Positions 19,501 to 20,825 of a stretch of 64,000 nt of DNA are shown in pieces. The DNA is taken from NCBI RefSeq assembly GCF_006345805.1, contig NC_042998.1:134912001-134976000 (forward strand), read 5' to 3'. This DNA comes from Octopus sinensis. Taxonomy: Eukaryota. Position 1 is the stretch's first letter, and each line of letters starts with the position of its first letter. A program made the position numbers and the translations under genes. A model generated the notes under the pieces. The model did not search any database, was not told the DNA's origin, and worked only from the letters and a program-made list of their open reading frames with translations.

Positions 19501-19635
19501 TGCATTGATGGAAGGGCTGACACCTTGTGCATTGAGTAGAAATGTGGAGGTTAGTGTAGTGGCTGGTTTTGACTGTTGCAGGGGGCTTGGATTTTTTGTG
19601 TGTGTTAGTGGCAGCAATGTGGGGAATTGGTGCAC
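16596..19635 (-). pseudogene. LINE ORF2: AP endonuclease and reverse transcriptase, frameshifted
   Basis: LLNAQG, LTETHL, RADRIGRRKGG, LYRPP, GDFNLP (APE); YLDFSKAFD, GVPQGTVLGPLLF, FADD (RT); LYSLQRRRERY. Split across several ORF-track pieces by small indels. Confidence 0.9.
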
Positions 19636-20825
19636 TGGGGTAATAGCATAGGATGGTGTTGAGTGATGGCTAGAATGTTTTTGTGTATCTCTTTTGCCAT
19701 GTTCAACATGGCTAAAAAAGAATTTTCCTGCTTAGGGAGCAGTTTTTGGCTGGAGGTGTGGATAGGGTTGTAGTTTCCACTTTTGTTGTTGTTGTTTTTG
19801 TGTCTTCCTGAAAAGACTGGACCAGCATTACTGCAGCATGGTGTGTTTTTATTTTTATTTTTATTCAGGTTTGTGTGTTGGCTTGAAGCCCCGTTTCTGT
19901 TTGTGCGTCGGGTCCCCGGAAGATGAGTGAAGGGACAGTCACTCAGCAGACATATTCTCTCACGTTGGGAATACCGGCAGATTTTGGGACTCCGAGTTGT
20001 GTGTGTTTTAAATTTCGATTTACTATTTGGTGGTGTTGATGTTATTGTGGGATGCGTGCTTTGGCCTTGGCCGGTAGTGCGTCTAGTGCCAGGTAGATGT
20101 GTGAAGATGCAGTCACTATTTGTGCAGAGTCTCTGGCGCAGTGAATAGCGGCATATTTTGGGATTTCTTGTTTGTGCCGTGGGGGGCGCATTCTGCTTCA
20201 TATGTTTCTTTAAGTTTTTGTTACTGCAGTAGTATTGAGGTGGTGATGTGGGGGAAGAGAGCAGTGGTTTCTTATTTGATTTTTTGTTGGTATTTTTGGT
20301 GATAGAAGACGGTGGTGGCAGCGGTGGTGATGATGATGATAATTGTGGTGGTTGCCGTGAGAGCGGTGAAAAGATACTGGCATTCAGTGAATCATCTAGT
20401 ATGCTAGAGTTGAGGAGTGGCTGTTGTTGTTCTTGTTGCTGTTGTTGTTCTTGTTGCTGTTGTTGTTGTTGTTGTGCTTGACCGATGTTAGGGTCAGCTA
20501 TTGTGCTGAGAACTAGGAGTGGCTCATTCTGTTGTTGTTGTGGCTGTTGATTTTGTAGCTATTGCTCTTCTTGAACAGTGAAAATATAAAGAAGTTTTTC
20601 AAAATGGCTTTTTGTCAGTTTGAAAGCGGCTTCGATATGCTTCAGTTTGCTACGAATCTGTTTGACGGATCGTGTGTTGATTATTTGTGATGTTTTTTCG
20701 GCAATCTCATTCAAACATAAAACATTTAAATTTTCTGTTTGGGAAAGAGAGAACCAAGTGTTTATTAAAACATCAATTTCATTATCAGACCAATTTCGTC
20801 TGTTGCAGGCCTGCAAGTTAGTCAT
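19605..20825 (-). CDS. LINE ORF1 (~406 codons, one in-frame TAG): Myb/SANT-like domain, polyQ/Pro-Ser linker, two CCCH fingers
   Basis: Manual translation joins 20559..20825 and 19605..20201 in one frame through the TAG at 20559-20561. C-x8-C-x4-C-x3-H at 20097-20153 and 19923-19979, each followed by LPGTRR. Confidence 0.75.

Follow-up and report, generated by a model that had tools for sequence, protein, structure and literature searches.

Long interspersed nuclear elements (LINEs) of the CR1/L2 group encode a first open reading frame (ORF1) of varied domain content, and a 64,000-nucleotide stretch of the Octopus sinensis genome (NCBI RefSeq assembly GCF_006345805.1, contig NC_042998.1, positions 134,912,001 to 134,976,000; hereafter the window) raises the question of whether a Myb/SANT-like DNA-binding domain can be an integral part of such an ORF1 and, if so, what it would do there. 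A reading of the letters alone (the sequence-only reading) had proposed that an ORF1 located at 19605-20825 of the window joins an N-terminal Myb/SANT-like domain to a glutamine tract and two CCCH fingers, and that the N-terminal part is a captured module that could steer the element's ribonucleoprotein (RNP) to (TA)n. The analyses described here support this architecture and its membership in the element with high confidence; a role of the Myb/SANT-like domain in directing insertion into (TA)n is put forward as a tentative proposal.

ORF1 lies on the minus strand at 19605-20825 and comprises 406 codons, from an ATG at 20825-20823 to a TAA at 19607-19605. Translation of the minus strand from this ATG gives MTNLQACNRRNWSDNEIDVLINTWF after the start, with the quoted residues RRNWSDNEIDVLINTW, followed by NEIAEK and then by RSVKQIRSKLKHI. 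The window copy is broken by one in-frame TAG, codon 89 (20559-20561, minus strand), which stands at the start of a glutamine tract and is the sole stop before the terminal TAA. At the aligned position a related metagenome scaffold discussed below (L008) has the glutamine codon CAA, which fits the suggestion that a CAG codon changed to TAG. The frame is clearly coding-like, since it holds one internal stop in 406 codons, where the two remaining frames of that strand have 20 and 28, and since the linker of 119 codons that separates the Myb part from finger 1 would be stop-free in just 0.6% of composition-matched shuffles.

Several parts can be distinguished within this frame, all of them on the minus strand. 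Firstly, the Myb/SANT-like domain (Pfam Myb_DNA-bind_4) occupies 20604-20801, corresponding to residues 9-74. Secondly, a low-complexity linker rich in Gln, Ser and Pro extends over 20202-20558, with polyQ at 20529-20555 and 20421-20480. The linker is followed by two fingers of the pattern C-x8-C-x4-C-x3-H, CRYSLRQRLCTNSDCIFTH at 20097-20153 and CRYSQRERICLLSDCPFTH at 19923-19979, each continued by HLPGTRR and each kept in the aligned homologues. Lastly, a C-terminal helix motif, ENSFLAMLNMAKEIHKNILAI (19665-19727), is kept in P0035/L008, L005, L001, P0040, P0043 and P0044, relatives that are introduced below. The residues, polyQ and paired fingers listed in the sequence-only reading, in one frame interrupted by a TAG, were all reproduced in this translation. 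Scored against Pfam zf-CCCH_2 (Nab2-type), the window fingers reach 19.0 bits, under the gathering score of 25.8, and they are therefore called CCCH-type by pattern and conservation, without membership in the Pfam family. Specifically, in an alignment of eight finger sequences the second and third cysteines are invariant, while the first cysteine and the histidine are each missing from a single (degenerate) copy. No RRM, CCHC knuckle, Transposase_22, PHD or SGNH-esterase domain was detected in the window ORF1 by Pfam at E <= 10.

The assignment of the N-terminal part to the Myb/SANT-like class is drawn from profile matches together with a conserved signature, because structure prediction and searches of the PDB were uninformative. 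Residues 1-88 of the window ORF1 match Myb_DNA-bind_4 with 29.6 bits (E 9e-7; gathering score 27), a value that falls to 26.1 bits in the context of the full-length ORF1, and the related protein P0037 scores 31.7 bits; with both the window protein and P0037 over the gathering score, the initial assignment holds. Among five family members scanned, three match the profile at E <= 0.1, including P0039, which stays under the gathering score. Members that are 31-51% identical to the window domain match independently, always over columns 1-72 of the profile, and no other family competes for the segment. The conserved signature reads N-W-S-D/E-x-E-I/V-D-x-L-I-x-x-W ... R-S/N-x-K/R-Q-I-x-x-K-L/I-K, in which four of five copies have W12 and four of five have W24, a stop codon taking the place of W12 in L006 and of W24 in L007. 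Comparison of the Myb codons between the window and L008 gives a proportion of nonsynonymous differences (pN) of 0.266 and a proportion of synonymous differences (pS) of 0.757; pN/pS is given here in place of dN/dS, as synonymous sites are saturated. The excess of saturated pS over pN suggests that the domain has been kept by purifying selection while the lineages diverged.

Whether this domain travels with the LINE had to be examined outside the window, because ORF1 is present in neither of the two other window copies of the family. A word-indexed protein search with the whole ORF1 returned no match, and exact-sequence look-ups of two window ORFs returned none on record. An exhaustive search of representatives with the whole ORF1 identified P0037, P0039 and P0042, which match the Myb part, P0037 aligning up to query residue 112 and hence past the window stop, as well as P0035 (48% identity), P0036, P0038, P0040, P0043 and P0044, which match the CCCH/tail part. 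A profile search with a four-sequence Myb alignment recovered P0037, P0039 and P0042 again and nothing further. When ORF2 served as query, the best match was a protein of Argonauta hians (49% in BLASTP and, across the entire ORF2, 56% in tblastn), alongside marine-metagenome contigs.

The most informative of the related contigs is L008, a 3.7-kb ENA metagenome scaffold that is collinear at the DNA level with 20840->17447 of the window. Its Myb domain is 53% identical to that of the window at the amino acid level (E 8e-30) and is followed by a polyQ that reads through, a damaged first finger, an intact second finger, the tail NSFLAMLNLAKEIQRSIL...PQCWH, and an ORF2 that is 58-70% identical to that of the window. 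Similarly, L005, a Logan contig, carries Myb, polyQ, a frameshift, one CCCH finger and the tail, followed by an ORF2 with endonuclease (EN) and reverse transcriptase (RT), while L007 reads (TA)n, four bases, ATG-Myb, polyQ, two degenerate fingers and the tail, and L006 reads (TGTA)n, Myb, polyQ and then unrelated sequence. PolyQ thus stands 3' of the Myb domain in each of L005, L006, L007 and L008. As L008, L005 and L007 keep the same order, and as L008 belongs to the same ORF2 lineage, the Myb segment is, on this comparison of sequences, integral to the ORF1 of an element family seen in at least four other contigs and no accidental upstream sequence. The linkage to ORF2 in other copies, which the sequence-only reading had proposed to examine, was accordingly found in full order in L008, and the series of Myb, polyQ, CCCH and tail in L005 and L007.

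One feature of L005 deserves separate mention. In L005:1-4569 (Logan SRR29346471), the Myb-type ORF1, which shares 56% identity with that of the window in the tail and 38-44% in the Myb domain, adjoins an intact ORF2 of 1093 amino acids that is 25-30% identical to the window ORF2 lineage, and hence more distant from it than are the ORF2s of the PHD- and MBT-type relatives described below. The pairing reflects either an exchange of ORF1 from one LINE lineage to another or a chimeric contig.

The element that carries ORF1 can be delimited in the window. ORF2 (16596-19635, minus strand) encodes an endonuclease of the apurinic/apyrimidinic (APE) type and a reverse transcriptase, and contains several frameshifts; its conceptual translation matches Pfam Exo_endo_phos (35.5 bits), Exo_endo_phos_2 (44.2 bits) and RVT_1 (98.1 bits). 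No ATG is found near the start of ORF2, the frame of which is -1 with respect to that of ORF1, opens at 19635 and shares ~30 nt with the end of ORF1; this arrangement suggests frameshifting, reinitiation or non-AUG initiation for ORF2. A 3' untranslated region (UTR) at 16497-16595 (minus strand) ends in a (ATCAAAGT)4 tail that adjoins a (TA)n tract at 16462-16496. At the other end, window 20840-20596 aligns with L008 364-608 and nothing is shared upstream, so that the last bases with DNA similarity to L008 form a leader at 20826-20840 (minus strand) that is probably the 5' end of the element, with a (TA)6 tract at 20848-20860 in the flank just past it. No conserved 5' UTR is shared among the upstream regions of the copies. 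The start of the Myb ORF lies ~23 nt from a TA-type microsatellite in the window, 4 nt in L007 ((TA)n) and <=70 nt in L006 ((TGTA)n); such proximity to a microsatellite, about 4-70 nt in each of three independent copies, argues that the ORF stands at the true 5' end, and the element appears to begin almost at the ORF1 start codon. The inclusion of 20560-21135 in the element consequently stands up to 20840, the Myb segment being present in L008, but not for 20841-21135, which was considered as a 5' UTR, rejected as such and taken as flank, since similarity to L008 ends at 20840, 15 nt upstream of the ATG.

Taken as a whole, 20840->16497 on the minus strand is very probably a full-length, recently inserted and defective two-ORF LINE of the APE type, belonging to the CR1/L2 group. 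A single nonsense codon interrupts its ORF1 and several frameshifts disrupt its ORF2, so that the copy is dead. The label 'CR1-type' is provisional; the APE endonuclease with RT, the octamer-repeat 3' tail and a YWxRLxxLxLxSLxxRRxR motif are consistent with it.

Comparison with more distant relatives suggests that the Myb/SANT-like domain is one occupant of a variable position. A core composed of a finger followed by HL-x-GTRR and a C-terminal amphipathic helix lies directly upstream of an EN+RT ORF2 in L001, L002-L004, L010/L011 and L012, and the ORF2s linked to this core align end to end with that of the window. Within this group the ORF2 of L001 is 56% identical to that of the window, and its ORF1 N-terminus has been lost to 5' truncation; L002-L004 (ORF2 46-48%) carry an unmatched region with a C4HC3 PHD-like pattern that has no significant Pfam match; L012 (37-40%) has an ORF1 without a recognisable N-terminal module; and L010 (34%) shows weak MBT/Tudor-knot and PHD matches at the ORF1 N-terminus. 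Because these relatives share the CCCH and helix core but bear a PHD-like module, an MBT/Tudor-like plus PHD-like module or no recognisable module, the N-terminus is read from these sequences as a variable slot in which modules are swapped. That the Myb module was 'captured', as the sequence-only reading put it, is plausible; no donor was found. The Argonauta hians locus L001, in which an ORF upstream of ORF2 shows the same pair of fingers and the C-terminal helix, is silent with respect to Myb, since its ORF1 has lost everything 5' of a point in the low-complexity linker. In that sequence (L001:8467-8890 and 12880-12925, BAAFZT010000203.1) the 5' junction of the LINE holds a unit resembling a miniature inverted-repeat transposable element (MITE; about 8514-8890) with long terminal inverted repeats, and the outer flanks of the two sides of the LINE copy are reverse complements of each other.

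Two further copies of the window family bear on the question of insertion sites. The second copy (21322-23999, plus strand) starts within the endonuclease as a result of 5' truncation and faces the full-length copy head-to-head; it is 97-100% identical to that copy and ends in a (TTCAAAGT)2 tail running into (TA)n. The third (27790-28532, minus strand), 5'-truncated inside RT, has (TA)n on both sides and a (ATCAAAGT)2 tail. The three copies thus lie within 12 kb and are 97-100% identical; their differing 5' truncation points and differing numbers of tail repeats are the reasons for which they look like separate recent insertions into TA microsatellite and not a duplication. Twin priming was considered as the origin of the inverted pair and rejected, as the 3' end is present in both arms. 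In this family the 3' tails are short tandem repeats and not poly(A), and the same holds for the relatives, in which tails of (ATCCAAGGT)2, (ACCCAAGGT)2-3 and (TATCTAAGTG)2 are found.

All three window copies of the family (3/3) have 3' junctions that run from the octamer tail into (TA)n, against a background of ~6% of window positions, and the 5' ends of the full-length and third copies also adjoin (TA)n. Among the PHD-type relatives, with ORF2s of 46-48% amino acid identity, none of three 3' junctions lies in (TA)n. LINE ORF1 proteins (ORF1p) are usually treated as RNA chaperones, and the target choice of APE-type LINEs is usually credited to the endonuclease. A model in which ORF1p contributes to that choice may nonetheless be outlined, on the analogy of other ORF1 proteins: the CCCH fingers would bind the A/C-rich RNA of the element, the C-terminal helix would multimerise ORF1p, and the Myb domain would tether the RNP to DNA or chromatin at the insertion site, plausibly a (TA)n microsatellite, before the ORF2 endonuclease nicks. 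That the Myb domain directs insertion into (TA)n is possible, and we hold it tentatively. The fuller version, in which ORF1p itself makes the choice of target through recognition of (TA)n by the Myb/SANT-like domain and delivery of the RNP, module swaps (Myb, PHD, MBT/Tudor) change the insertion niche, and L005 represents an ORF1 moved between LINE lineages, is rated no higher.

A number of observations weigh against such a role. The three (TA)n junctions derive from one family in one TA-rich stretch of 12 kb; upstream (TA)n is absent in L005 and L008; TA repeats in the window likewise surround a second LINE family, which need not be of the Myb type; and a preference of the endonuclease, or microhomology with the tail (...AAAGT|ATAT), would suffice for a (TA)n bias without Myb. 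Against the explanation as a whole stands the finding that none of the contigs carries an intact ORF1 of the Myb type, every copy having a stop or frameshift and L008 lacking an ATG.

The explanation that survives best alongside the proposed targeting role accepts the Myb domain as a real part of ORF1 and attributes insertion at (TA)n to the ORF2 endonuclease together with pairing between the 3' tail of the RNA and the target once nicked, leaving the Myb domain to serve in a SANT-like contact with chromatin or histone tails, in nuclear import, or in binding the nucleic acid of the element itself. We consider this a strong contender, a little short of an even chance. APE endonucleases usually set the target preference of LINEs, the tail ...AAAGT directly meets ATAT and so permits microhomology, the second LINE family of the window shares the TA-repeat setting, and putative chromatin-reader modules of PHD-like and MBT/Tudor-like kinds fill this slot in sister lineages. 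It is harder to reconcile with the PHD-type relatives, which have similar ORF2s but whose three junctions all lie elsewhere than at (TA)n, and with the general finding that Myb_DNA-bind_4 domains are typically sequence-specific DNA binders.

Considerably less probable is the explanation that the Myb_DNA-bind_4 match arose by chance and that the N-terminus is a different, unclassified helical module. The scores exceed the gathering score by just 2-5 bits, and the third core position, a conserved Trp in trihelix proteins, is Leu or Ile (K-L-K / K-I-K) in the Myb-type copies. PDB sequence searches with the single sequence and with a profile gave coiled-coil noise and no Myb. AlphaFold2 models of the Myb region have low predicted local distance difference test scores (pLDDT; 63 from the single sequence, 60 from the four-sequence alignment), and Foldseek with the single-sequence model (pLDDT 63) found no match in the PDB at E < 1. 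Most of these points also count against the explanation preferred here. A chance match is, however, difficult to square with the repeated recovery of Myb_DNA-bind_4, over the same columns and with no competing family, from proteins as divergent as those described above, or with the conservation of W-S-x2-E-x3-L-I-x2-W ... R-S-x2-Q-I-x2-K-L-K, and the predicted secondary structure, with helices at 14-31, 35-49 and 54-68 plus a fourth at 72-83, would suit a Myb-like fold.

Very improbable, finally, is the proposal that the Myb-like ORF has nothing to do with the LINE and is, for instance, a host exon or part of a PIF/Harbinger Myb-like accessory gene that happens to lie in frame upstream of a 5'-truncated element. 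In its favour, 19198-21320 occurs just once in the window, L001 from Argonauta has a CCCH ORF1 without Myb, and Harbinger transposons do encode Myb/SANT/trihelix proteins. Against it, three independent, diverged copies (L008, L005 and L007) repeat the one order of parts, L008 with the same ORF2 lineage, the ORF1 frame is continuous, and L001 is simply 5'-truncated in the linker, with the MITE-like insert at the junction.

With the Myb/SANT-like domain thus retained as part of ORF1, the presence of a DNA-binding-type domain here and of putative chromatin readers at the same position in sisters points to an exchangeable 'addressing' slot in ORF1p. If it is true that the Myb domain recognises (TA)n, the element would offer a natural instance of programmable site selection under the direction of ORF1, and would help to explain how LINE families partition a genome and why LINE insertions collect in the TA microsatellites of this genome. 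Irrespective of targeting, the Myb/SANT-like and CCCH modules add two domain types to the typology of CR1/L2 ORF1s.

Other features of the window may be noted briefly. The related second LINE family (25154-27543, minus strand) has an ORF2 ~45% identical at the amino acid level, is 5'-truncated, is bounded at both ends by TA-rich microsatellite, and is tandemly duplicated within its RT region, where LSDMPSNARTATLASYADDTKVSQKIQNPSDV occurs twice in the ORF at 25815-26135. Long compound TA/TATG/TG microsatellite arrays occupy 23999-24900 and 27550-29000, and in the window as a whole there are 71 (TA)>=6 tracts, amounting to 2.4% coverage. At 6633-7334 and 55217-55774, both on the plus strand, are one ORF with an OTU cysteine-protease domain (Pfam E 7e-13) and another that is a PIF1-like helicase fragment (Pfam E 3e-35), which may be remnants of Helitron type. 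A 260-amino-acid ORF that runs from near the window edge (75-857, plus strand) has a terminal CCHC zinc knuckle (Pfam 20.1 bits, gathering score 20.8) and is probably the gag-like ORF1 of another retroelement.

How does this ORF1 compare with those already described? Published LINE ORF1 types I to IV comprise RRM with CCHC, coiled coil with RRM and C-terminal domain (CTD), PHD, and esterase forms, and the ORF1 domain table of the same study lists PHD, RRM, CCHC, Transposase_22, esterase and zinc finger/leucine zipper (zf/lz) entries, with no Myb and no CCCH (Metcalfe & Casane 2014, PMC4120745). Under that scheme the window ORF1 would, by its domains, be 'type V, unclassified', and the variable N-terminal slot fits the accompanying picture of Jockey-superfamily ORF1s as modular and reticulate (PMC4120745). 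Neither Myb nor CCCH is mentioned in a 2026 survey of vertebrate CR1 elements (PMC13343379), and a full-text literature search, the scope of which excluded Repbase and subscription journals, found no precedent for Myb or CCCH in a LINE ORF1. The combination therefore represents domain types absent from accessible ORF1 classifications, which falls short of proof that it has not previously been described.

The closest known counterparts are CR1/L2-group LINEs whose ORF1 has an N-terminal PHD finger, designated Type III and related subtypes (Kapitonov & Jurka 2003; Khazina & Weichenrieder 2009; Metcalfe & Casane 2014, PMC4120745). These share with the window element two ORFs, APE-type machinery, a short-repeat 3' tail and a modular ORF1 with a small N-terminal domain directed at chromatin or DNA, and the nearest relatives, L002-L004 and L010, place a PHD-like Cys/His pattern ahead of the same CCCH and helix core. 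In contrast to the PHD-type elements, the window module is Myb/SANT-like, and the nucleic-acid part is CCCH and not RRM or CCHC. The fingers themselves resemble the tandem CCCH RNA-binding fingers of the Nab2/ZC3H14 and TIS11 types in their C-x8-C-x4-C-x3-H spacing, and the best Pfam match is the weak one to Nab2-type zf-CCCH_2; they differ in that this match stays under the gathering score and in an HL-x-GTRR extension specific to this LINE ORF1 group.

Beyond these, the possible use of a Myb-like domain to reach a target has parallels in other mobile elements. PIF/Harbinger elements encode a separate accessory protein of the Myb/SANT/trihelix kind, through which their catalytic protein is recruited to specific DNA. 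Unlike the window element, however, they are DNA transposons and have no CCCH fingers, and no sequence relatives of this accessory type were recovered in the ORF1 and Myb protein searches. TRAS1 and SART1, of the R1 clade, are APE-type LINEs that insert into simple repeats, possess a Myb-like region and have an ORF1p that contributes to target localisation. Their clade is a different one, however, and their target is (TTAGG)n; the Myb-like motif is placed between the EN and RT of ORF2, and CCHC knuckles are found in ORF1. In R2 and other LINEs with a restriction-like endonuclease (RLE), a Myb-type domain and zinc fingers recognise the target DNA, so that R2 resembles the window element in having a non-LTR (long terminal repeat) retrotransposon encode a Myb-type domain together with zinc fingers. 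R2 nevertheless has a single ORF in which Myb is fused to RT, a restriction-like endonuclease that is C-terminal, and fingers that are C2H2-type (CCHH) DNA binders, whereas in the window element the domain lies in a separate ORF1 of a two-ORF element, the APE endonuclease is N-terminal in ORF2, and the domain is of the Myb_DNA-bind_4 (trihelix-like) family.

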